Shown: positions 36,652-55,228, counted from the stretch's first letter. The stretch is 64,000 nucleotides of DNA from Lepidodermella squamata (GCA_047495785.1 JBLDXI010000015.1:4464001-4528000); one strand, 5' to 3'. Notes: generated by a model not told the origin, from the letters alone. Numbers and translations are program-made.

Positions 36652-39001
36652 ATGGTCGATTTGTATTGTGCGGAGTCACTATCACTGACGTCGAAGCACG
36701 CCTACCCCGATCCGGTCATGTTCTCTCAATCAGCTGGCCTTGCGATGGAGGAGGACGATGAAGTCGCAGCACAGGCGGCACCCGATTGTCTTCAGTCACT
36801 ACACGCTATCGAACACGTGTGGACTCCTGACGCCAACTACTTCGATCAAGACCGACAACCTGATCTGAAGCCCTACATGCGAAAGATGGTAGTAGAATGG
36901 CTCTTGGAGGTTTGATTATTTATTTATTTTTTATTCCGGCTTTTTATTTTTCGTTTGATTTTTTCAGGTCTGCAAAGAAATGCACTGCGAAGACGAAGTT
37001 TTTCCCCTCACTGTCAATTTGCTCGACCGGTTTCTTGCAGTTCAACAAATCCCAAAGACGGAGTTTCAATTACTCGCGTCCGCGTGCCTTCTCGTCGCGT
37101 CGAAGCTCCGCGAAACCGCGTCGTTGCCCGCCGAGAGAATTTGCAAGTACACAGAATACAGCATATCAGTCGAACAGCTATATGTGAGTTTCTTTGATCT
37201 CTCTGTTAATTAGCCGGCGCCACTGTGTCTGCTACTCTGTTTCGCTCTAGACACAATCGAAATGTGCTTATTTCATTGTTTTCTTTTTTTTCAGGCGTAC
37301 GAAATGTTCGTGCTAGATCGTTTGAATTGGGATCTCGGCGTTGTTACGGCGCACGAGATTGCTGATCATCTCATGTACCGCCTTTTTTCCGACCCGACCG
37401 CGCCCATGTTTTATCGTATTCGGCGGCACAGTCGTGCGCTCCTCGATCTCGCGCAAGCAGGTGTGTTACGAATTTTATTTTCATCAAGTCAAAATTAGTA
37501 TATCGAAATAATTTTATTGCACCTGCTCGCCATGTGTTCTGCGAGGCGCGCTTCCCTGTCGCCGGTTGTCGCGCGCTCTCTTAGCTTAATGACCTTGCGC
37601 CTGTCATTATCTCATTTTTTCAAGCAAAATCTGCGTTAATAATATAACAGCTATAAAAACAAGCTTGGTGTCATGCGTCATCCAGGCATCGTTTTACCTC
37701 TCCAAGCAGCAGTAAAACTAGTGCTTTTATTATATTATGGCTTTGACGCAGCCTTAATATATATCTTGATAAGCGTGTCGAGCGATTAGGTATTAAGGCT
37801 GACGCGAGCTGAATTTTCAGCGGGTGACACGTGCAGCGTTTTTTCTCTCACTTTTTCTTTTCGCTGCGTTCAATGGTCGGCTAGACCAGCCGTGAAAGTG
37901 GGGTAAGGTGAGCATTAGCGACGCCCTCGTTGCGTGTCACCTAGCGGTGACGCTCCCGTGAACGCTAACCGTTCGCGTGGTTACGATGGCGTTGTATAAC
38001 GCTATAATAGAACGGCCCGCGCTAATCCGCGCCCCGTTCAAGGCCTGCTCGTTTCCTAGCAAAAATCAGCGCGGTTATTACAGCGGGTCCTTTGTTCAGC
38101 CACAGGTTAGCTTGTAACGTGCCGAATTTGTTACGACTGAAAGAAAATGTTATGCACGGTGTTATTACCTGTAATAATTATAATTTGTTTTTATTTTCCG
38201 TTTAGATTTCGAGTTCGCTTTCCTCATGCCGTCGCTATTGGCCGCGAGTGCCATCATGTCTTCGCTGTGTCACTTCAACTGTGCTGACCTCTTTCACCCA
38301 GAAAGCGATAACCGTGTCTATCAGCAAGTCGGAGAATTGGTCGGCGCATCAGCGGTGAGTGTGACCTTCCCGCCCTTTCGCATGCGCAATTGCTCGCGCG
38401 GTGCGGTTTTATGACTTCTTTCAATAAAATTGCACCGCGCGCTGCTGTAAAATTTTAAGGCGGAATTCCGCTCGTATTGCTTTTATTGCATCATTTGCTT
38501 TGGCGTGCGCGCACACTTCCGTCGGTGTAGAATACCAATGCCCGTGTGAATTTCGTCTGGCTTGAGTTGGCTATTGTGTGTTTGTCTACGGATTGGTAGC
38601 AATTATCGATAGCACGTAGTCGAGACTAATCCGACAAATCGCTAGTTGATTGCGCGTGCTATCTCAAGTGATTTGGGACTCGAAAAAGAAACAAATAAGA
38701 TAATGATGTTTGATTTTCGAATTTACAGGAATGTCTCGCCGAATGGTCGATGCTTCTGACTCGATTACGTAACGACTTCATCGCGCAACACCAGCAGTCG
38801 TCACCGGTGTTGTCTTCGCCGGACTCTGGTGTATCGAGCCCGCTCGAACAGTCGCTCAACTCGAGCGCCATCCAAGTACCGCAACAACAGCAGCAAAAGC
38901 AACAGCCATCGAGCTTGCCTACCACGCCTGTGCGGACTTCGAGCGGCGATGAGTCACATCCCCGGACGCCGACTGATATCGCTGACCTATTCGATCACTA
39001 A
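36652..39001 (+). CDS. CCND: G1/S cyclin D; 5 exons
   Basis: N-terminal LYCAE (LxCxE), cyclin box PYMRKMVVEWLLEVC...NLLDRFL...FQLLASACLLVASKLRE, and C-terminal PRTPTD phosphodegron. Confidence 0.93.
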
Positions 39002-40638: not shown

Positions 40639-41169
40639 TTAAGAACCCATGAGTAGGGTACCGTTGGATAGTCCAAGAAATGGCCAGTCTGGACGTTTAC
40701 AATACAAATCAATGCAACCTATTTCGGGACTTGGGACATGAAATACAGGTAGAGTTTTGATATCATATTTTCGAAATTGTTTATTTCTGGTAGAACTTCC
40801 GTGGCTGCTCAACCGAATCCGTCTCATATAATTTGAAATGATATGCCATTTCCCGGGAGCCGTCTTACAGGCTATCCTACGGTACCCCGCTCATTGGGTC
40901 TTTACCTTACCATCTTTGGTTTTTGATATGCCGAAGTCACCCCAATTTACAGTAGGTCTATTGTAGTCTGTTTCGATATACCGCTTCACTGTGATTCCAT
41001 ATCGATTATCGGTTACTTTTGCCTGGAATGACTGATTGCCATGGGATTTTATCTCAACGATCCCAGGCCATTCAACTGGGTCTAAGCAGCGAAATTCAAA
41101 ACAATCAAGCAAGACAAAACAAAAACCCGAAATAATACATAAATTCAGCTTTATTTGCAATAATCGCAT
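40639..41169 (-). CDS. Hypothetical 2-exon secreted orphan protein (about 160 aa)
   Basis: MRLLQIKLNLCIISGFCFVLLDC signal-like start and an in-frame join AAG|GTAAAG...TAAG|ACG to the ORF ending at 40639. No recognised domain. Confidence 0.35.
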
Positions 41170-41176
41170 AACGATA

Positions 41177-43853
41177 TCACTGGCCCACAACATAAGGAGG
41201 CAATTCAAAAACACGAACACTCCAATCTGAGCTTGACACAGCCAACAACAAATTACCGCCGTCGCCGATCGGTTTGAAACGCAGTCTTGATATCGATTTC
41301 GACGGGCACAACGAAGTAGGAAATCGATAATATTCACGGGCCGAAATTGAACCGCCAGAACAGTCTACGCTGTAAATAATTATTTCGCCAGATTCAAATC
41401 CAGCAACAAGTGTGTAGCGGCCAGGCTTTTCAGCCGGAACGAAAGCTAGAGCTGTCACTGAAGATGGTAGACCTGCCAACTGGGCTGCAAAAGTCGGCTG
41501 AGAATTTACACAAATTGCCACAGTTTCGAGGCTCCAGATTAGAATTTGCTGATCTCGCGAGCCTGTCGCGAACAGCTTATCATCACAAGACCAATCACAA
41601 GCCCAAATTATTCGAGCATGAGCCGACGTCGATTTCTCCAAACCAGCAATCCGTTTCATCTTATTCGCCGGATCTGTTGAGTCACTGTTGCGCTGAAACA
41701 AATGCCAAGTCCGGTCTCGAGAAACCGCAAGTAAGAATTCACCCGAATGACTGAACCTGAGCTGAGTGACGGTCAAAGTCGGACCCTCTAGGTGTTGAAC
41801 AGGCCGCCAATCGAAAGATTTCTCGGTACTTGCCGGCTTATTTTGAGGCGCCCAGGGTGACCACAGAATTATTTGAGCTGTATCAGCAGATGTTGCTTTA
41901 CAGGCAGATGCAATCAATCGATTAGAGCTGGCGCCTATGTTCGGCGAAACATCAACGGCGAAAACTTCAGATCCGTGGCCGTATAATTTCCGCATTTCAG
42001 GCCACAATGTGTGTTGGACCAAAATTTCAGGCGTCGGCGGTTGTTCGTCATTAACTACCGTGACCGCCGTAATTATTCGGTCGTTATTTGCCGCGCCGAA
42101 CTCGTCGCCACCCCGCTTTTTACCACCGCCGCCACCCTCACCATCGTCATCGCCGAAATCCTCCTCGGCATTTTCGTCATTCTCAGGCGATTCGTCGTCG
42201 CCATAACCTCGATTTGTAAGACCGAGTGGTGGGACAGTCGCGCCTAGAACTTTAGATTTCGACGAAGAATCGTCGCCGTCTTTCCCATCAAATTTACACA
42301 GGCGTGTGAAAAGCTGCCGGGCAAGTTGAGGCATGCTAAACACCCGCATAGCCTTTTCGTCCGCTGCTGATAGGAAACTAGTCGAATTCAACGCAGCTAT
42401 CGCATTGAAGCCGAAACCATGAACCTGCGGCCGGCCGAATTCGTACCAAATCGGTTTCAGGGCTGGTGATTTGTGCCAGGCTGAATGCAAACGGGTGGTT
42501 TGGTCGCCACCTACCGATAACAGGTACTGCCCGGATGTCGGTTCCCAGGTCAAATCAGCTACCTGACTCAGATGCCCGGATGGCATAGGAATGCTAACCC
42601 AAGCATCGCCAACTTTACGCCAAGCATGAATTGCCCCGGTAAAGCTATGCGCGACAACCATTCGACCGCCCTGGGCGAAACGGGCGCCGCAGTAACTCAT
42701 ACCAGCTGCCGAACCCGTTCCGCCAATTCTCGCGAAACGCGCCGATTCAGTCCAAATTCCCTCACTATTTCTATCACTCGGCTCCTGCCAAACAATGACA
42801 GATCGATCGATGGAGCATGTCAAAATGCTCATGAGCGAAGTTTTTCGATCAACGCAAATATCAACCGTATACACCCAATCTGTATGCCCCTTCAATATCG
42901 TCTCCAAGCGAATGTAGACATTCGTACCCGGCAACCAAGGGCATTCGAAGTTGAACGCCGACTTCTGAAGATCCGCCCTCAGATTGGCTGAAGCGTCATT
43001 GTCTTTAGCAGATTTCAGGATTTCACTATCGTTTTTTGCGGCGTAGATTTTCCACAAACGAACAGTCGAATCTTGACTGGCACTGCAAAGATAGGTCAAT
43101 TCATCCGATGACCGCAGCGATGCTAGACTTGTCAGCCAATCAGTGTGGCCTAGAAGTTGAATGGCTGGTTGAAATTTAACGCAGTCAAGAGGCGATATCA
43201 ACAGGCGAACACTGCCGTCATCACAGCCAACGCTCAGTAGATAGGATTTGCAGAAGGACAACTTCGTTAAATTGACTTCAAGAGGCAAACTGCGACCGGA
43301 GCATCGAATGTCTTGGAATGTGGAATTGTCCAGGGTACACTCCCCACCAGCACTAATACTGGCGAGTGAAATTCGAACCAAGCCATCAGCCGAACATGAC
43401 GCTACTAAGAATTTGCTACCATCATCACCGAATTTGGTTGCATGGATAGAAGTGACGGATTCAGCATGAACTATAAACAAATGGAAATTAATTTAAATGG
43501 ATCCCCGAGCCTTCAATGAACTAACGTTTCTTATGGGTCAAATGCTTTTTTGATCTTGTATATAGGCACAAATTTCCATCGGCTGTTCCAAACAGGAAAA
43601 CGTCGGTCGAAAACCAGAACACCGACGAAACTTCAGATTGAGGGTTTCTTAGAGATGGCGTGTCAATTATGCAGAAGGCATCAACATTTTCCTTTGCGTA
43701 GCTCAATGATTGGCCAATTACTGAGACGAAATTGGACGAGGCGTATGCTACAAAAGCGCCGTCGTTTGTGTCATCTTCAGGGGCAGCTGATAGAGCATGA
43801 CTGGATCGGCTGCAGCCAGCACTACAATACAGGAGGCCAATCTCTGAAGCCAT
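41177..43853 (-). CDS. ELP2: Elongator complex protein 2 (WD40); 2 exons
   Basis: EFGRPQVHG, SAADEKAMRVF, TLWPEMRKLYGHGSE, IASACKAT, LTVTQLRFS, LLAVSRDR and AHARIIW. Confidence 0.95.
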
Positions 43854-44305
43854 ACGGGTTAACAATCTATGTCCAAAACAAATCCCGATGTTTAGCTATT
43901 TTTATAGCTTTATTTTTTCAAACACTGATCTGGTGATATAACAGTATTAATACAATATAATTTCAAGGTATGCAATAATAAGCGAACGATAAGAAAGCGA
44001 TGTCTGTCAATTGCATGTACTACCGAAGCCATAAGCAGCTATTATTACCTTTGCACCGAGCAGTTCAAGGCCGTAATTTCCAAAGGCACAGAAAGACACA
44101 GAACAATGTTAAACAGTCGAAGCAAAATATAACAGGCGGGTTCATTTTTCAGAAAGGTAGCGCACGTCCTCGACAAAAGCTTGGCGTTGTATAAAGTATT
44201 GCATCTTTAGCAGTAAGTATAAGTTTCGTTGCGATAAATAAAAGAGATCTCACAACACTCGTATTTCCGTAGTTTATACCCGAATTGGAGAGCAAATAAA
44301 TCCGG

Positions 44306-45418
44306 TCAAACTTCGACGATTTGCTTGCCGATATTACTGCCGTTCATCATAGACACGAAGGCCATGCCCGCTGATTTGAGCCCAGAAGATCGGGTGATCG
44401 GAAGCAACAGATCCCCACTTGCCACCCATTGCCGCAATTGATCCATGGCTTGCGGCCATTCGGAAATAATATCGAAAGCGGCAAAATTGTGGCGATTAAC
44501 CTAACAAATAGTTTAAATGTCTCCAAATTCAATCAAGGAGGGCAATCTTCTTACCTTGTTTTTACGTAAATGCTGGCCGATATCACTCGGGGTCTCCTCG
44601 TCGTCCGCATCCGTACCGTCACTTTGTTCTTGGTAGGTTGAAATACTGCCGACCGAGACGACATGCGAATTCTTTCGCATCAAGCGTTTCACAACATTGC
44701 TGATATGACCACCGACTAAATCGATGAAAATATCAACGCCTTTCGGGCACACAGCCGGCAAGTCATGGCTGGCGAATGTTTCGCTTTTGTAGCAAATAGC
44801 AGCGGCCAAGTTCAGATTTTTGACCAGATAGTCGCACTTTTCATGCGTGCTTGTCAATCCAATGACACGATCACAGCCCAGCAGAGACAGGACTTGAGCA
44901 GCCACGAAACCAACTGAGCCACATGCCGTAGACACAACGGCAGTTTGAGAACCTGCTGGCAAGACACAGTCCGCCCTAATTATGGCAAGATAGCCGGTCA
45001 ACGCCGAAATTCCATATGAGTATAGGTCGAGTTCAATCGAAGGTTCTTGAATCAATATGAGCTGTTTTTTGTTGATTACCTGGCGACGCTGCCATGCCCA
45101 CCCACGAAGACTCGCTACGATATCCCCTGTTTTGAAACCAGACACACTTTTACCAACAGCAGCGACCCTGCCGACACCTGAAAGGCCTTGACAAGGCACG
45201 TTCAACGGCCACTCTTTCATGTAATCGACGGGAATCTCGTGTTCATCCATTCGAAATCGCAAAACAGTGTCCAGGGAGAAGTTGAGCGTTTCCACGAGGA
45301 CTTCATCATCGCTGGGGGACGGCTCCGCTATAGACCGCACTTCGAAGCAGTCGGCCGATACTCTTTTTCGATTGCCAGGTCGTTTTCGCAGGAAAACGCC
45401 AAAGTTGGCATCAGCCAT
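44306..45418 (-). CDS. PTGR2: Prostaglandin reductase 2-like MDR oxidoreductase; 2 exons
   Basis: EVLVETLNFSLD..LRFRM, CPKGVDIFIDLVGG, GSISTY, and the second exon AFVSMMNGSNIGKQIVEV*. Confidence 0.85.
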
Positions 45419-45528
45419 AATTTCTGCTCTTAAATTACTATTATAGTAATGACAAGAAAATTGTTCATTAAATGAATTAACTGAAGCCAAGAAACGTAAA
45501 GAGAAAGCGCACATAAGGAAGCAATAAG

Positions 45529-46776
45529 TTAATGCGAATCTTCATCGAAGTTGATTCTCACTAGAAATTTCAGGCCGGAATTTTCGTTATAAATTCGCAA
45601 AAATAACGGCTGGACTTGTTCCTCGCGAGGCGTCGCCGAGTCAACGCCAGCAATCAAGGTGACTCGAACTGAACATTTTTCAGCAGTTGCATCTCGGTTA
45701 TCAGATAAATCGTCTTCTGAAGGCTGTTCCAGAACGATGACTTCCGGATTATCAGCGTCTGAACTTGGAACAATCAGCTCGAACGGGGCGGAAGGTTCCA
45801 GGCGTAGTCGCATAGGCTGGCCCGATGTAACCGCCTGAGTGGCTGAAGTTGAAACGACTGACATAGCGAAAGACGGGTGGTAAAACAGCAAATTTGCAGC
45901 AGGTGGCCAGGCTGACATGTTATCGACCTTAACTGTGGGCAGCACTGATGCCGCGCCCAGTGACATTCTAAACCACGGTCGGCTATGCTGGCCGTGACGC
46001 AGTTCCGGGAAACAGATCACGTGATCGCATTTCGAGCACCGCAAACCACGCCGAACAGCCAATTGTCGTGGCAACGGCTTGTTATATCGTGGTTGAGGTG
46101 GATTCGTAATGAAATCGTCGGTAAGAGCCGTTGGCACACCAGTTGGAATGACCGGAAAACGCTCTAGTGTTACGTTGACATTTAGGCTGGATACTTGTCG
46201 AGCGTTGAGACGGAACTGGGTTGACGACTTTCGGCCGGTTTTCCTTTTGTTCTTACCCAAGGCAATAGCGCAAGCTTTTTCGACCAGACCAAGCTCTCGG
46301 TACGCTTCGAGCAACGTATGCGAAAAGACAATGTCCGCATCCTGAGCTGGAGAATCCGCATCCCCCGCATTGAAAAAATGCGATGCCTGAGGCAGCAGGG
46401 TAGAATCTGGAATTCCGGCGTCGCGAGAAGACCATTGGCACACTGAACAGTGGAGATAAAAAGTCCTCGGAGCTTGCGAGCTTGAAGCAGTCGACGCTGT
46501 GCTAGCAGCTGAGGTAACAGCTACGGCCGGTTGGTTTGCTTTGACCGCAAGTTGGTTACGACAGCACGGGCAGAGAACGCATTTTGAGCAAATGCACCCA
46601 TGGGCCCTAGCATCAGACGGTGGAAGGGGCTCGATGCACGACGGACAGTAAAAAGTTTCCGCTTCGTGGCTCAGGCACCGCAAACAGCGCAGGTCGGTAC
46701 AGTGAGAACAGAAATAAAGCCTCGACAACGGCGATGTTGACCCACATGAGCACAGATATTCTACGGCAGTGGACAT
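45529..46776 (-). CDS. DCTN4: Dynactin subunit 4 (p62), intronless
   Basis: VEYLCSCG..SPLSRLYFCSHC..LRC..C..HE..TFYCPSCIE, CPCC, YLHCSVCQWSSRD and LRCSKCDH. Confidence 0.9.
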   Translation of the reverse strand: MSTAVEYLCSCGSTSPLSRLYFCSHCTDLRCLRCLSHEAETFYCPSCIEPLPPSDARAHGCICSKCVLCPCCRNQLAVKANQPAVAVTSAASTASTASSSQAPRTFYLHCSVCQWSSRDAGIPDSTLLPQASHFFNAGDADSPAQDADIVFSHTLLEAYRELGLVEKACAIALGKNKRKTGRKSSTQFRLNARQVSSLNVNVTLERFPVIPTGVPTALTDDFITNPPQPRYNKPLPRQLAVRRGLRCSKCDHVICFPELRHGQHSRPWFRMSLGAASVLPTVKVDNMSAWPPAANLLFYHPSFAMSVVSTSATQAVTSGQPMRLRLEPSAPFELIVPSSDADNPEVIVLEQPSEDDLSDNRDATAEKCSVRVTLIAGVDSATPREEQVQPLFLRIYNENSGLKFLVRINFDEDSH

Positions 46777-46891
46777 TATTTAATGAAAACTAGGAAAACA
46801 AAACGAAAGTGTTTTCACCGACACCAATATATTTTTTCACCATGGAATGAAAGAAATGCAGGTCGTAAGATCACCATTTCACTGAAATAAA

Positions 46892-48211
46892 TTACTCTAA
46901 TTTCGGAGTCGTCGGTAAACATAAATTGCAAAATTCGCCCTTCTTCCAGAAGCTTGTGTCCTTCCAACCAACGTAGCCCTTTGAAGTGACGAGTTTCAGC
47001 TCGTCAGCGTAGCTGTTTTTCGGTGGCGCCGAGTGGTGAGGGTCCAAAATAAGGTAGCGAACAGCTCCAGTCGCTCTATTGAGAAAAACCCCTGCAATCG
47101 TATGAGCGAGAACGCCTCCACCAATCATCACAGGTGCACCATTGTTTCGGAAATGCTGAATCATTTCGGAAGCAAGCGAATCCATGTCATCACCGGATGA
47201 AACATTCCGAATGCGATACTTGATACCGAGGTAATTTTCTAGAATGTACCCAACCTCGATAGAACCGATCCATTTTGTGCTGCCGATAAAATCCTTCCCT
47301 TTATCGCCGATTTCAACGAGTATTGACTGAATTGTGCGGTGGTCCGGCTCGGGTTTGTCGGTATAGCCTTGCATCCTGAACCAAGAGCAAACTGTTTGCA
47401 GGGACCTATACGCACAGCCCCAGCCTGAATCATTGAAGCCGTCTTCGTTATACCGAAAATAGCGATAAAATCCGGGCGTGATAGCCATTTCAACGGTTGC
47501 AGATTTGCCAGGTACAACAGGTGCATTCAGATCAATAGGTTCAGGAGTCGCAAGAGCCACGTGAGGATTAATCAAGTGCGCCCCGGCAGTTTCTATCCAA
47601 ATATCTGCCAAAACATCGCCGTATATCAAATCGTTTTTCAGGCCTGTCTCTTTGCGAACAATAGCCAAGCATTGCTCTGAATTAGCCTCACTTGGGAGCA
47701 GCATGGTGATCACTTTTGAAGATGTGGCATAATGTTTTGGCTGCAAAGGTACGTCAGGCTGAACCGACAGTTTTTCCACATATTCCTCTATTTGTTTCCG
47801 AATCGCTTCCAGGCACAATTTCTTGAATTTGACTGAAATTGAGGCATCAGATTGAAATTCTGCTTCGCTATCAACTGACAACATTTCGGCGGGTATTAAA
47901 CAATCAATTCTGATAGCATCAAGGGAGTAGTTTGCCACGTCAGGCATTTTTTCCGCCTTCAACGCCAAGCTTCCAATTGAAAGATGCGAATCGGGTAAGG
48001 AACGACTAACAAAAATGCTCACAGGTATCAATGTCATCAGAACACTAGTCGTTTTTTCGGCATAGACAGGCTCAAAGGAGCAACGAGCATCCGTCAATAT
48101 TTCATCCAGTAATTTGAAATCAGCTTTTATGTTCAGCTCAGTGTTGTCCTTCTTGGAGAACAGTATGTCATGGGTAAGGGAGATCCGGAAAAAAGTAGGT
48201 GTTTCCTTCAT
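46892..48211 (-). CDS. UFSP2: UFM1-specific protease 2, intronless
   Basis: DSGWGCAYRSLQTVCSW, WIGSIEV, PVMIGGGVLAHTIAGV and LILDPH. Confidence 0.95.
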   Translation of the reverse strand: MKETPTFFRISLTHDILFSKKDNTELNIKADFKLLDEILTDARCSFEPVYAEKTTSVLMTLIPVSIFVSRSLPDSHLSIGSLALKAEKMPDVANYSLDAIRIDCLIPAEMLSVDSEAEFQSDASISVKFKKLCLEAIRKQIEEYVEKLSVQPDVPLQPKHYATSSKVITMLLPSEANSEQCLAIVRKETGLKNDLIYGDVLADIWIETAGAHLINPHVALATPEPIDLNAPVVPGKSATVEMAITPGFYRYFRYNEDGFNDSGWGCAYRSLQTVCSWFRMQGYTDKPEPDHRTIQSILVEIGDKGKDFIGSTKWIGSIEVGYILENYLGIKYRIRNVSSGDDMDSLASEMIQHFRNNGAPVMIGGGVLAHTIAGVFLNRATGAVRYLILDPHHSAPPKNSYADELKLVTSKGYVGWKDTSFWKKGEFCNLCLPTTPKLE

Positions 48212-48381
48212 AATTTAACAATTCTATGTAAAAGCAGATAACAAGTTGGTATAGGTTGTAGCATTGGAAAACCCTAAAAAATGTATGGCAGATCCGCAAA
48301 AAAGATCATCATCAAAAGTTGTCTTTCGCAACACGCGCAAATGAGCTGCAATGAATGAGCTTACGGATTGGAGTGGAGAAC

Positions 48382-49017
48382 TCATTCAATTTTAGCCCAA
48401 ATACGATCGAATTCTTTAGAGTAAATTTGAGCAACTGCGAGGTTTTTTTCCAGGAGGATAAGGTTCTCGAAATTGCCAGTGACGGCGGTTTGGGTCCAAT
48501 TGAAAGAGCCAGTCATCACAGATTCTCCATCAAGAATGGCGAATTTATGATGCATCAAGTTAGCTGTCCCGAAGTTTATTCGCACAGGTATTCCGAGGTC
48601 TCGCAATCGAGGAATAACCGAATCGCTCAAGTCAGCATTGTCTTTGTCAACGATGATTCGAATCGCTACTTTTCGAATGGTGTGAAGCTCCTCGATAAGT
48701 TGACCAAGTGTTGGAGATGTAAATATAAATATCGCAATATCCAAAGTTTTCCTGGGCGCTGACAAAAATCGAATAACGCTGCCGAAAGACGATACATCAT
48801 GAGACATGCGACACTCTCGTTTGGTGCATGAATTGAAAACAGAGAAGTGTCTCAGACAGGCCATTGATGAGTCAGGGAAGAACAAAACGCGGACATTATC
48901 TTTTGATTTAGATGTCGAGGGAGAAGTAAGCCATCTGCGACAGCCGACATATACTATTCCAGCGCCAAGTAGAGCACCGAAACACGATGCAGCGCACACG
49001 CGGAGGAAAGAAGCCAT
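48382..49017 (-). CDS. PLD6: MitoPLD / Zucchini endonuclease, intronless
   Basis: N-terminal TM anchor, VLFFPD, CCCH zinc site, and a single HKD motif MHHKFAILDG...TGSFNWT..A...NFEN. Confidence 0.93.
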   Translation of the reverse strand: MASFLRVCAASCFGALLGAGIVYVGCRRWLTSPSTSKSKDNVRVLFFPDSSMACLRHFSVFNSCTKRECRMSHDVSSFGSVIRFLSAPRKTLDIAIFIFTSPTLGQLIEELHTIRKVAIRIIVDKDNADLSDSVIPRLRDLGIPVRINFGTANLMHHKFAILDGESVMTGSFNWTQTAVTGNFENLILLEKNLAVAQIYSKEFDRIWAKIE

Positions 49018-49825
49018 TGAGAATCCTGATAAAATCGACGATAATAATCATAGACACTTATTAATAAAATAAAAATACCCAAACGTACAGCTTACAGCTT
49101 ATATCACTGTGTAAAACCAGGGCTACACGATGCCGAAGACAAACTGCAAGTAACCGCCGAATAAAAAAGCAAACTAAGGACATCGAAATACACTAGTTAA
49201 ATCTTGTCAAATAGAAATCCGATCGTGGCCACGATGGTACAGACGACTCTCAACTCTCATGAGTTGGGTCATAGGCAATAAACAAGCCAAATTGCTGATA
49301 GATTTTTACTTTTCATTAATTCTGATTACGAAAAAATCGGGAAAAGTGTATGACACCTCAGACTTCCTTATGAACATCAATACATCAGCTTCAGCTTAAG
49401 CATCAACTAGATTCGAAAAGATTCAGCCGAAAGATTTAGGAAATCAGATATACCATATCCATCCATATAACATACCCATCAGAAATCAGAAACAGGATTA
49501 CCAGGAAATGAGTCTCAGTTTTCAGTCGGCAGAGTCATGAGCCGTGAATCTATCTAAATCAACATCCAATCGAACCAAAAAACAACTGGGATCCTTACCC
49601 TGAGGGCAAGCAACGTCTGGGTGGAAGGCGGAAACCGGCAGACACAGACGTCTGGGGTCTGGGTGGAAGACGCCTTGACCGGGAAAAGTGAGAAGTGAAC
49701 GGTGATGAAGGCGCGCGCAATTTTGAGAGGTAAATTTTTGACATGTTATACATTGAATTCTTCCCTGTCGATATCATATATGCAGTTTCACATTATGTTG
49801 TATTATATTATGGAGATGTAGGGAT

Positions 49826-49840
49826 GTCACGTGATCACGT
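49826..49840. promoter_or_regulatory. Tandem E-box GTCACGTGATCACGT in the divergent promoter between the PLD6 and TOM20 clusters
   Basis: Motif lies between two oppositely oriented candidate non-coding first exons with GTAAGG (about 49596, minus) and GTAAAC (about 49890, plus) donors. Confidence 0.5.
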
Positions 49841-50267
49841 TTTTTTTATGTTTTTCGAAAATCTCCTACTGCTACGAGACCACAAGTAGGTAAACCTTGA
49901 TCGCTGACGGATTGTGCTTCACTGTAGCGCTGCTTACTGCTTAATGCTGGGTTTACTGTTTATACGGAGGAAGTTTGCTTTATTCGCTTATCAATTCTCA
50001 ATTTGCATATTTTCTCTGATTTTACTGCTCACTGCACTTTACATCTTCATTTAACCAACGGGCGCGTGTCTTGTATTTCTTCTTCTTGGGCTATCGCGAT
50101 CATAGCAAACCGCAAACCATCAGCAAACTAGCTAATGGTTTGGGCAAAGTGCTGTGTTTAGTGTGCCTATTTTCTTAACTGGCCAATCAGTATGGTCAGC
50201 GACCAGTCGCCAATCTCAACATTTCTTCATGAGTTTGATTCTTATACTTATTTTCTGCCACTTAGGG

Positions 50268-50753
50268 ATGATGTCGAAGTCCGGCTTAATTGCTACAGCT
50301 GCTGGCGTTGGCGTATCTTTGTTTGTTGGTTACTGTGTCTACTTCGATTACAAAAGACGTTCAGCTCCGGACTTCAAGGCACGACTTTTAGCTAAGCGAA
50401 AGAAGGAGAAGAACTCCTCTCAAGAAATCGAATTTCCCAATCTCTCTGATCAGCAAGCTATGCAGGAGTTTTTCTTTACGCAGCTTAGACTGGGAGAGGA
50501 CTTGCTCAATCAAGGAAACGTCAAGGAGGGCGTCACTCATCTTAGCCTTGCAATCATGCTCACTGGTCAAACCCGTGAGCTTTTGCAGATGATGGAAACC
50601 ACATTGCCACCCGAAACGTTCAAGCGTTTACTCGCTGAATTACCAAAGGCTCGGGAACGTGTTCGAGCCGCTTTTATGGCACAGACCGGTGGTAAGGGTA
50701 TGCCCTTCAGCGCTGCGGGTATGGGAGGAAACGTTTTAGAAGAACTGGAGTGA
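50268..50753 (+). CDS. TOMM20: Mitochondrial import receptor TOM20, intronless CDS
   Basis: FVGYCVYFDYKRRSAPDFK, FFFTQLRLGEDLL and TLPP. Confidence 0.95.
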   Translation: MMSKSGLIATAAGVGVSLFVGYCVYFDYKRRSAPDFKARLLAKRKKEKNSSQEIEFPNLSDQQAMQEFFFTQLRLGEDLLNQGNVKEGVTHLSLAIMLTGQTRELLQMMETTLPPETFKRLLAELPKARERVRAAFMAQTGGKGMPFSAAGMGGNVLEELE

Positions 50754-50945: not shown

Positions 50946-52721
50946 ATGATCAGCTCACATTTTACCGGCTACAAGGTAAGCATATAAATAGGCTGAAGCT
51001 CTATTTATGGCATGATTTAATTACTAGGCGCCTGTTCGCACTCAGCTGGAACATAATTCGAATCTCGATATTGATAACCTGGTTATGGATTATCGTATGA
51101 CTGGCATCGTGTGCACCATAGGCCCGGCTTGCGCCAAAGTGGAAACTTTGATGGAGATGGTAGCTGCTGGCATGAATATTGCTCGACTGAATTTTTCTCA
51201 CGGTACTCACGAGTATCATGCGGAGAGCATTCGTTTGATTCGCGAGGCTAATTCCAAGCTGGTATTTCCCCACCGTCCTGCAGCTATTGCGCTGGATACA
51301 AAAGGCCCTGAAATCCGTACCGGAATTTTCAACGGCGACTTCAAGATCGAAGTTACACTGAAGAAGGGCGATATCATTACCGTGACTATTGATGATCAGT
51401 ATAAGGAAAAGCAAACTGAAAGCCTCGTTTGGATAGATTACAAAAATATTCTCAAGGTTATCGAAGTTGGCAAGCGCATTTTTATTGACGACGGGCTGCT
51501 CTCTCTCCTCGTTTTGGAGATTGGAAAAGATTCCTTGAAGTGCGAAGTCGAGAACGGCGGTGTTCTTGGCAGCAAGAAAGGCGTCAATTTACCAGGAACC
51601 CCAGTGGACTTGCCCCCAGTGTCTGAACAGGATAAGAAAGATTTACTATTTGGTGTCCAACAAGGCGTTGATATGATCTTTGCCTCGTTTATTCGCAATG
51701 GGGATGCCGTTCGCGAATTGAGAAAAATTATGGGCGAAGCTGGCAAGAAGATCCTTATTATTTCGAAGGTTGAAAATCACGAAGGTGTGAAGCGATTCGA
51801 TGAGATTCTGGAAGCATCTGACGGCGTTATGGTTGCTCGAGGCGATTTGGGTATCGAAATTCCGTCTGAGAAAGTGTTCCTTGCACAGAAGATGATGATT
51901 GCCAAGTGCAACACAGCTGGAAAGCCTGTTATTTGTGCCACCCAGATGTTGGAATCGATGACCTACAAGCCTCGGCCAACTCGCGCGGAAGCTGGCGATG
52001 TAGCCAATGCTGTTTTGGATGGCGCTGACTGCGTCATGCTTTCTGGAGAAACAGCAAAGGGCAAGTACCCCCTGGAATGCGTTCGAATGATGGCCTTGAT
52101 CAGTCGTGAAGCAGAGTTTGTTCATACACCGAGATCGCTTATTTTTGTTAATATTAGTTCATTTTAGAGCTTCATTGTTCTACACAAAGATGTTCGAGGA
52201 GTTGCGCACTGCTGCGTTGGCTGCAAATATGGATCACATGGCCGCCGCTGCTATTTCAGCAGTCGAAGCTTCTTTCAACGTCAATGCCAAAGCCATCATC
52301 GTACTGACGAAGACAGGAAAGTATGAAACCTAGTCTCTCATGGATTCCACGGAATTCTAAGTTATTTATTTACCAAGGTCGGCTGCTTACATCGCCCAAT
52401 TCCGTCCGAAATGCGTTACGATTGCCGTGACCCGTGATGCACAAGTCGCTCGCCAGCTTCACTTGTACAGAGGTGTCATGCCTGTGGTTTACCCGAAACC
52501 TGAGTACAGCCCCGATGTGTGGACTGAGGATGTAAGTTCTGTCAGGATAATCTTACTTTTTTGTATGATTGAATTGTTAGGTTGAATCACGCGTCAACCA
52601 TGCTATCGACGTCGGTATTGAAAACGGATTCGTCCAGCGTGGCCAATACGTCATCATCACGACTGGTTGGAAGGCCGGTACTGGCTTCACGAATACCGTC
52701 CGCATCCACAAGGTTGAATAA
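50946..52721 (+). CDS. PYK: Pyruvate kinase copy 1; 5 coding exons
   Basis: [58 protein letters not shown] and [12 protein letters not shown]. Confidence 0.96.
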
Positions 52722-53637: not shown

Positions 53638-55228
53638 ATGACTGAACTTGCTCATAAAGTTCGGCTGGACATTGACTCTCCAGCAGCTGCCTATCGCAAA
53701 ACGGGCATCGTGTGTACTATCGGCCCGGCATGTGCGAACCAGGAAACTTTACTGGAAATGATCAGGGCAGGCATGAACATTGCCCGCCTCAATTTTTCAC
53801 ACGGTTCTCATGAATATCATGCCAATTCAATCGCCCTGATACGCCAAGTCAATGCCAACTTACCAGCCCCGCTGCGTTCGGTTGCCATCGCTCTCGATAC
53901 CAAGGGTCCTGAAATCCGTACCGGAATTTTCCAAGGCGATTTTAAAAACGAAATCACTCTGGAAAAAGGTGCGATCGTCACTTTAACTATCAATGATAAG
54001 TACAAAGACCAGCAAACTCAGTCGATTATTTGGGTTGATTACAAACGTATCATCAACGTCATGGATGTCGGCAAGAAAATCTACATCGACGACGGTCTTA
54101 TTGCCCTTGTGGTTATTGAAATCGGCTTTGACAGCTTGAAATGTGAGGTGGATAACGGCGGTGTACTTGGTAGCAAAAAGGGAGTCAACTTGCCCGGAAC
54201 GCCTGTTGATTTACCACCTGTCTCCGAGCAGGACAAGAAAGACCTGATGTTCGGCGTCGAACAGGGGGTTGATATGATTTTTGCTTCATTCATACGAAAC
54301 GCCGACGGCATTCGTGAAATTCGAAAAATTCTCGGCGAAAAGGGAAAAGAGATAATGATCATCTCAAAAATCGAGAATCACGAGGGAGTAAAGAAATTTG
54401 ATGAAATTCTACGTGTCTCTGATGGTATCATGGTCGCTCGTGGTGACTTGGGTATCGAAATTGCGTCGGAGAAGGTCTTTTTGGCCCAAAAAATGATGAT
54501 CGCCAAGTGCAACACTGCCGGTAAACCCGTGATCTGCGCTACTCAAATGCTAGAATCGATGACTTACAAACCACGCCCGACTCGCGCTGAAGCCAGCGAT
54601 GTTGCTAACGCTGTTCTGGACGGTGCCGATTGTGTAATGCTGTCTGGCGAAACCGCGAAAGGCAAATACCCGGTCGAATGCGTCAATATGATGGCATCAA
54701 TTTCCCGTGAGGCCGAATCATCGATTTCACTGAAGCATATTTTCGAAGAGCTTCGTAACGTTGCAATGCGCACTGACATGGACCGCGTTGCTGCTGCCGC
54801 GATCTCGGCTGTCGAGGCTTCGTTTAACGTCGATGCTCAGGCCATCATCGTGTTAACTGCCACCGGTGCTTCGGCCGCCTACATAGCCCAGTTCCGCCCA
54901 AGATGCATCACTATGGCTGTTACTCGCGATTTACAATGCGCTCGTCAAATGCACTTGTTCCGAGGTGTCATGCCAATCTTCTATCCGACTGATTGGACCG
55001 AAGAGTCCGGAATTCCTTGGGCTGAAGATGTTGAGAGCCGTGTTAACTGCGCCCTCGATTTCGGCAAGGGCTGCGGTTTCATCTCACCTGGTAATAAAAT
55101 ACTTATTTAATTTGGTAGTTTATATTTTTCAAACATGCGTATTTTAAGGTGGATACGTTATCATCACGACTGGCTGGAAGGAGGGCGCTGGACATACTAA
55201 CACTATCCGCATCCACGAAGTCAAATAA
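53638..55228 (+). CDS. PYK: Pyruvate kinase copy 2; 2 coding exons
   Basis: Same catalytic motifs as copy 1, with a single intron near the C-terminus (about 55091-55149). Confidence 0.96.

Follow-up and report, generated by a model that had tools for sequence, protein, structure and literature searches.

Nematodes, tunicates and flatworms are well known to combine operons with spliced-leader (SL) trans-splicing. Both features are patchily distributed over the animal phyla, and whether they have one or many origins is unsettled. In the SL2 operons of Caenorhabditis elegans, unrelated housekeeping genes lie on one strand with spacers of ca. 100-170 nt and an acceptor just 5' of the downstream ATGs, the leader RNA gene possesses a donor and an Sm site, and gene order is kept between species. 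A locus alike in these respects occurs in the gastrotrich Lepidodermella squamata, in a 64,000-nt stretch of the genome (hereafter the window) where five functionally unrelated housekeeping genes follow one another on the minus strand in the order PLD6 > UFSP2 > DCTN4 > PTGR2 > ELP2. The data presented below indicate that these genes probably form one transcription unit, i.e. an operon resolved by leader trans-splicing. The mechanism itself is already known.

All coordinates are those of the window (GC content ca. 43%), and the cluster was read on the minus strand of 41000-50200 together with the list of open reading frames (ORFs). Genome-wide searches covered an assembly of 121.2 Mb in 151 contigs, the published assembly having 122 Mb, 157 contigs and 43% GC (PMC11660948). 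A preliminary description of this DNA had reported five co-oriented genes separated by stop-to-ATG gaps of 170, 115, 110 and 452 nt (PLD6-UFSP2, UFSP2-DCTN4, DCTN4-PTGR2 and PTGR2-ELP2, respectively). These values proved exact when the sequence was re-read, and both Pfam and solved-structure (PDB) searches uphold the gene identities.

The first gene encodes a MitoPLD/Zucchini-like product, PLD6 (49017-48382, 211 aa), with a Pfam PLDc_2 domain (1.1e-25) and a PDB match to mitochondrial cardiolipin hydrolase, i.e. PLD6 (E 5.9e-28). It is complete from the ATG at 49017 and has a counterpart of 210 aa in a distant relative (see below), so that the 5' limit of the cluster formerly set at 49740 was wrong. 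UFSP2 (48211-46892, 439 aa; Peptidase_C78, 1.1e-55), whose homologues bear that name in many animals, and DCTN4, the dynactin p62 gene (46776-45529, 415 aa; Dynactin_p62, 8.7e-28), are both intronless. PTGR2 consists of two exons (45418-44555 and 44500-44306) separated by an intron at 44554-44501, displays the Pfam domains ADH_N_2/ADH_zinc_N and matches prostaglandin reductase 2 among solved structures (E 1.3e-37). ELP2 (exon 1, 43853-43526; inferred intron, 43525-43471; exon 2, 43470-41177) carries WD40 repeats according to Pfam, matches Elongator complex protein 2 (PDB, E 1.9e-96) and is followed just 3' of its stop by an AATAAA at 41155-41150. The PTGR2 and ELP2 proteins were searched exon by exon. 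Matches obtained for window genes in protein searches were animal proteins; in a word-based search the top non-gastrotrich matches of PTGR2 were bacterial oxidoreductases (34%), though PDB names PTGR2. An exact-protein look-up placed the window UFSP2 and DCTN4 on no record, and no Rfam family was matched anywhere in the window.

Each downstream gene is preceded, 5-19 nt 5' of its ATG, by a pyrimidine-rich YAG that has the appearance of a splice acceptor. In the first spacer (48381-48212, 170 nt), the acceptor TTTACATAG, with its AG at 48225-48224, would give an exon start at 48223, and a donor-like GTAAGC is found at 48364-48359. The second spacer (46891-46777, 115 nt) contains the acceptor TTTTGTTTTCCTAG with an exon start at 46789. 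The third (45528-45419, 110 nt) offers two candidates, a TAG (exon start 45437) and a CAG (exon start 45423), together with an AATGAA at 45469-45464. Finally, the ELP2 acceptor TTTTGGACATAG and the 13-nt 5' untranslated region (UTR) that follows it occupy 43868-43854 (AG at 43868-43867, exon start 43866), with an AATAAA (43914-43909) located 43 nt upstream of the acceptor. The exon starts 48223, 46789, 45423 and 43866, the AATAAA and the GTAAGC are thus located exactly where they had been placed before. The CAG 5 nt before the PTGR2 ATG is likewise present, but it is not the sole acceptor there, the TAG located 19 nt 5' of the ATG being the better one. After the acceptor, the 5'UTRs of UFSP2 (48223-48212) and ELP2 (43866-43854) both start with ATTGTTAA (AG/AATTGTTAAATT and AG/ATTGTTAACCCGT, respectively), which may be chance or a signal. 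Poly(A) hexamers were found as AATAAA before the ELP2 acceptor and as variants only (AATGAA, AATATA) before those of PTGR2 and DCTN4.

Within the window, a pyrimidine-rich YAG at most 25 nt 5' of the ATG occurs in all five cluster genes versus 23.5% of 2167 ATGs (binomial P 7e-4), and the TAG version in the four downstream genes versus 10.7% (P 1.3e-4); the acceptor definition was chosen after the sites were seen and these P values, computed from the window alone, are indicative only. The same habit is observed at other gene starts of the window (7135, 30230, 53638 and TOM20 at 50268). Three of the gaps (170, 115 and 110 nt) have to accommodate both the 3'UTR of the upstream gene and the 5' end of the downstream one, which favours the operon reading.

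Further support came from a distant relative that is present in four ENA metagenome assemblies (ERZ27332993, ERZ23486787, ERZ23486764 and ERZ27333047). The closest relative of the window UFSP2 is 55% identical, far above other matches, and lies on a contig with the order PK < TOM20 < / > PLD6 > UFSP2 > DCTN4; the closest relative of PTGR2 (63% identical) lies on a contig with the order UFSP2 > DCTN4 > PTGR2 > ELP2. The two contigs overlap and are identical in the overlap, and further contigs display the order UFSP2 < PLD6 < / > TOM20 > PKa > PKb. Eight genes are therefore collinear between the window and the relative, with the five genes of the cluster all in the same order and orientation, at a protein identity of 54-63% (77% for PK). 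PLD6 and DCTN4 are 54% and 62% identical, respectively, and the ELP2 exons align at 54-61%. The gaps of the relative measure 59, 106, 151 and ca. 650 nt, the last of which contains a scaffold gap, and a pattern of three tight gaps plus one long gap, as read from the two sequences, is kept in both species. That the order is the same in so distant a relative, with smaller gaps (59 and 106 nt against 170 and 115 nt), suggests that a single RNA is probably made from the five genes. In a rotifer, as in another metagenomic eukaryote, UFSP2 is found beside different genes, which indicates that this arrangement is not an ancient synteny shared across phyla.

Non-coding DNA has not been retained to the same extent. 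For the spacers and the divergent region upstream of PLD6, alignment of the window with the relative was no better than that of shuffled sequence, and no conserved block was found in the spacers. PTGR2 has a single intron in each species, at different positions (44501-44554 in the window, L017:3012-3079 in the relative), which points to intron turnover since the split. In the relative, UFSP2 has a TAG 16 nt before its ATG and the distance from the PLD6 stop to this acceptor is only 43 nt, too little to accommodate a promoter and an exon together with an intron, introns being here of 53-55 nt.

If the cluster is an operon, its transcription would be under the control of the head-to-head region between PLD6 and TOM20, the precursor would be cut at the poly(A) site of each upstream gene, and a short capped leader, derived from a separate multi-copy small RNA, would be trans-spliced to the YAG located 5-19 nt before the downstream ATGs. 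The outcome would be five monocistronic mRNAs.

A candidate for the small RNA was found in the genome. The search combined the upstream element of U2 genes, CAGAAYGC (ca. 35 nt before the start), with an Sm site, reversed patterns serving as controls. It detected a family of ca. 45 or more dispersed copies (e.g. C4:13107-13420, C28:1016217-1016531, C15:1771394 and C15:3942586), versus 0 matches with the reversed patterns. The copies share a conserved upstream block (...GGGGCAAAATGCCTGACGGCAAAGTGTAGGCCATGACCTGGCGG) and a U2-type element, CA[A/G]AATGC, resembling a proximal sequence element (PSE) and located ca. 35 nt before the predicted start. The candidate leader part (...TTCTTTTGACACCGAATTCGGGGCCACAAG) is of 30-35 nt, is followed by GTCTGAGCAG and ends in ...GGGGCCACAAG directly before the donor GTCTGAG; its 3' end, ...TTTTGACACCGAATTCGGGGCCACAAG, reads ...CACAAG (AAG/GTCTGAG). 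Downstream come a hairpin, GTCAT-TGAAA-ATGAC, then the Sm site AAAATTTTGG and a tail containing TCAGACC, which is complementary to the donor GGTCTGA. Minor copies differ in the final bases of the 5' part, copies often occur in convergent pairs, and the loci are distinct from those of U1, U2 and U5. With a candidate leader, a GT donor, an Sm site and multiple copies, this family has the anatomy of SL RNA and is a candidate donor as judged from its sequence.

Two other possible sources were discarded. Rfam SL1 (RF00198) has 11 weak matches in the genome, all in one place (G000:C29:3415873-3419907) that corresponds to a 27-nt satellite (AAATTTCTCTTGAAGCGACAGGAATTTC-like). The second is a small RNA-like gene of the rDNA spacer (L016:853-966), in which the 5' part before the only GT would be of ca. 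13 nt by PSE spacing, and whose fold is no better than that of shuffled sequences (z 0.1). This gene (L016:835-977, G000:C5) occurs once per 8.46-kb rDNA unit, divergent from the linked 5S gene, and displays a PSE-like CAGAATGC, AAAAATTTTG, a GC hairpin and T10. In the same unit, a 28-nt motif (CCACATGCACRTGGTCATTGG...) is found before 5S and again ca. 525 nt on, with roughly 1000 copies genome-wide. The small nuclear RNA genes are themselves highly multiplied and partly arrayed, with at least 47 U2, 42 U1 and 48 U5 matches (e.g. C15:3264183-3290274 and C25:47161-107259), and some U2 genes have ATGCAAAT ca. 70 nt upstream and the PSE ca. 35-45 nt upstream.

Transcript data were provided by one run (X1, 2015) in the form of assembled contigs only. 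This run contains 60% of the words sampled from the region, and its contigs are considered RNA-derived because they carry GT..AG joints. One such joint confirms the PTGR2 intron at 44554-44501. A contig spanning 43958-44356 indicates that, of the 452 nt between PTGR2 and ELP2, 348 nt or more (44305-43958) are transcribed and belong to the PTGR2 3'UTR, so that at most 92 nt are left before the ELP2 acceptor. Room for a promoter is hence short throughout the cluster, with three gaps of 110-170 nt and a fourth having at most 92 nt outside the PTGR2 3'UTR. Some contig depth was also detected within 45400-45553, in the region of the third spacer. Bin depths and listed pieces define stretches devoid of X1 contigs at 48138-48199, 46585-46946, 45305-45399 and 43800-43957. 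In every downstream gene, the contigs leave the first 74-192 nt of the CDS uncovered, while they do cover the start of PLD6, where the 5'UTR is longer; such a pattern agrees with mRNA ends located very near the downstream ATGs and is weak evidence for them.

Several observations weigh against an operon resolved by a leader. First, the X1 strain is somewhat different from that of the genome (95-99% identity), and at the four downstream acceptors neither a leader nor a loose end was seen, as none of the 27 X1 contigs reaches any of them; the leader is unseen there because no RNA contig covers these sites. Second, introns of the 5'UTR placed immediately before an ATG do exist here, and PLD6, the only gene whose acceptor has an observed partner, is spliced in cis. 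In one X1 contig, position 49079 is joined to 49025, the shorter side of the joint measuring at least 33 nt. This joint defines a non-coding first exon at 49111-49079 (minimum extent, with a 5' end below ca. 49200) and, together with the sequence, a 53-nt GT..AG intron (49078-49026; CT..AC on the plus strand) whose acceptor lies 8 nt 5' of the PLD6 ATG. Third, no recognisable poly(A) hexamer was found in the first spacer, before UFSP2. Fourth, scans of metagenomes for two candidate leaders, that of the rDNA-spacer RNA and that of the better SL candidate, gave no match, and a search for leader-bearing retrocopies found none. Finally, all seven testable adjacencies with the relative are conserved, including the divergent PLD6/TOM20 pair, a count that comes with no baseline for non-operon neighbours.

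The PLD6 joint raises the question of whether the four downstream acceptors are of the ordinary cis type and belong to short 5'UTR introns, with tiny first exons hidden in the spacers or in the 3' ends of the upstream genes and with no leader involved. Such a situation would reproduce that of PLD6, whose acceptor is joined to an exon 53 nt upstream, and donor-like GT sites are indeed present in every spacer of the window, e.g. the GTAAGC at 48364. On the other hand, the 43 nt that precede the UFSP2 acceptor in the relative are too few to accommodate an exon together with an intron as long as those found here, the GTAAGC is not conserved in the relative, and no joint of this type occurs among the X1 contigs, which do not cover those acceptors. 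Ordinary cis-splicing of all four is thus considered quite improbable, and the specific warning of the preliminary description that cis-splicing might take place through the GTAAGC of the PLD6-UFSP2 spacer is unlikely to matter, given that the corresponding 43 nt of the relative cannot hold an intron.

The conserved adjacencies bear on a second explanation, in which a compact genome provides each gene with its own small promoter, located either in the spacer itself or within the terminal part of the preceding gene, and gene order reflects ordinary microsynteny. The acceptors may then still receive a leader, trans-splicing needing no operon. Since every testable adjacency is kept, the PK1 > PK2 pair with its 920 nt included, conservation is not specific to tight same-strand pairs. 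In addition, no X1 contig was seen to bridge two genes of the cluster, and contig depth differs across the five genes, though such depth cannot rank genes. Against separate promoters stand gaps of 59-170 nt, within which a 3'UTR, a poly(A) signal and an acceptor must already find their place, spacers that have no conserved promoter-like block in common, and the collinearity of eight genes at 54-63% identity in the midst of fully diverged non-coding DNA, which is probably more than would be expected of unconstrained gene order. Overall, individual promoters appear unlikely, albeit less so than cis-splicing at all four acceptors.

The operon reading is therefore retained as the probable one. Of the earlier proposal of a single polycistronic unit, the order, the orientation and the tiny spacers, which are kept in a relative of 54-63% identity, now stand together with a candidate SL RNA family; in the X1 contigs, neither a leader at the four acceptors nor a precursor bridging two genes was seen. 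The more specific proposal that the cluster is a true leader-resolved operon, kept intact in two gastrotrich lineages (ca. 55-60% protein identity) and supplied with its leader by the SL RNA family that ends in ...GGGGCCACAAG, is somewhat less secure, the evidence tilting slightly in its favour.

As for the limits of the cluster, PLD6 and TOM20 are arranged head to head across ca. 1 kb. This divergent intergenic region (49200-50265) contains GTCACGTGATCACG at 49826-49839, the octamer ATTTGCAT at 50002-50009 and a CCAAT box at ca. 50183. TCACGTGA is also found in the divergent region of the relative (L001, ca. 1205-1212), a match that alone is not above chance. A transcription start had been expected at 49740-49830 and finds no RNA support, X1 depth being 0 at 49200-49799. 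On the plus strand, TOM20 (50268-50753; Pfam MAS20, 2.3e-29), with a TAG 2 nt before its ATG, is the first gene of the opposite run TOM20 > PK1 > PK2, in which PK1 is located at 50946-52715 and PK2, which also has a TAG 2 nt before its ATG, at 53638-55222. The relative has the same run, its gaps measuring 137 and 207 nt, versus ca. 192 and ca. 920 nt in the window. At the other end, a cyclin-like multi-exon gene (36652-39001, plus strand), recognised by cyclin-box-like peptides in ORF translations, converges on ELP2, which indicates that the cluster ends there.

The genome paper of Lepidodermella squamata mentions no spliced leaders, trans-splicing or operons (PMC11660948), and full-text literature searches found no paper linking these with gastrotrichs or with Lepidodermella. 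Current phylogenies place flatworms as sister to gastrotrichs (Rouphozoa; PMC6468455). If the operon is true, Gastrotricha would be a further animal phylum with operons, raising the question of a common descent with the flatworm system; since flatworms, the neighbours of gastrotrichs in the tree, possess this mechanism, the present case would help to ask whether it was inherited or has arisen anew. A cluster kept in two gastrotrichs offers a concrete and easily tested case. It also bears on the annotation of the Lepidodermella squamata genome, in particular on 5' ends, merged or split gene models and the assignment of promoters.

When compared to the operons of Caenorhabditis elegans, the locus is known from its genes and from a candidate SL RNA, with the leader unseen on the cluster genes. 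The poly(A) signal seems to lie closer to the acceptor here (ca. 40 nt) and the acceptors are mostly TAG instead of TTTCAG. There is no sign of a specialised leader for downstream genes, though minor variants of the leader 3' end exist in the genome. The operons of tunicates (Ciona, Oikopleura) use a single leader and have almost no intercistronic region. Like them, the gastrotrich cluster appears to have a very short distance between the upstream 3' end and the downstream acceptor (43 nt from AATAAA in the case of ELP2), and it has compact, intron-poor genes with introns of ca. 50 nt; it differs from them in belonging to another phylum, in an unrelated leader sequence and in spacers (110-170 nt) that are longer than those typical of Oikopleura. 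Finally, flatworms (Schistosoma, Echinococcus, Macrostomum) combine leader trans-splicing with some polycistronic units, an association that the gastrotrich cluster would share, but their leaders end in AUG whereas the candidate leader described here ends in ...CACAAG.

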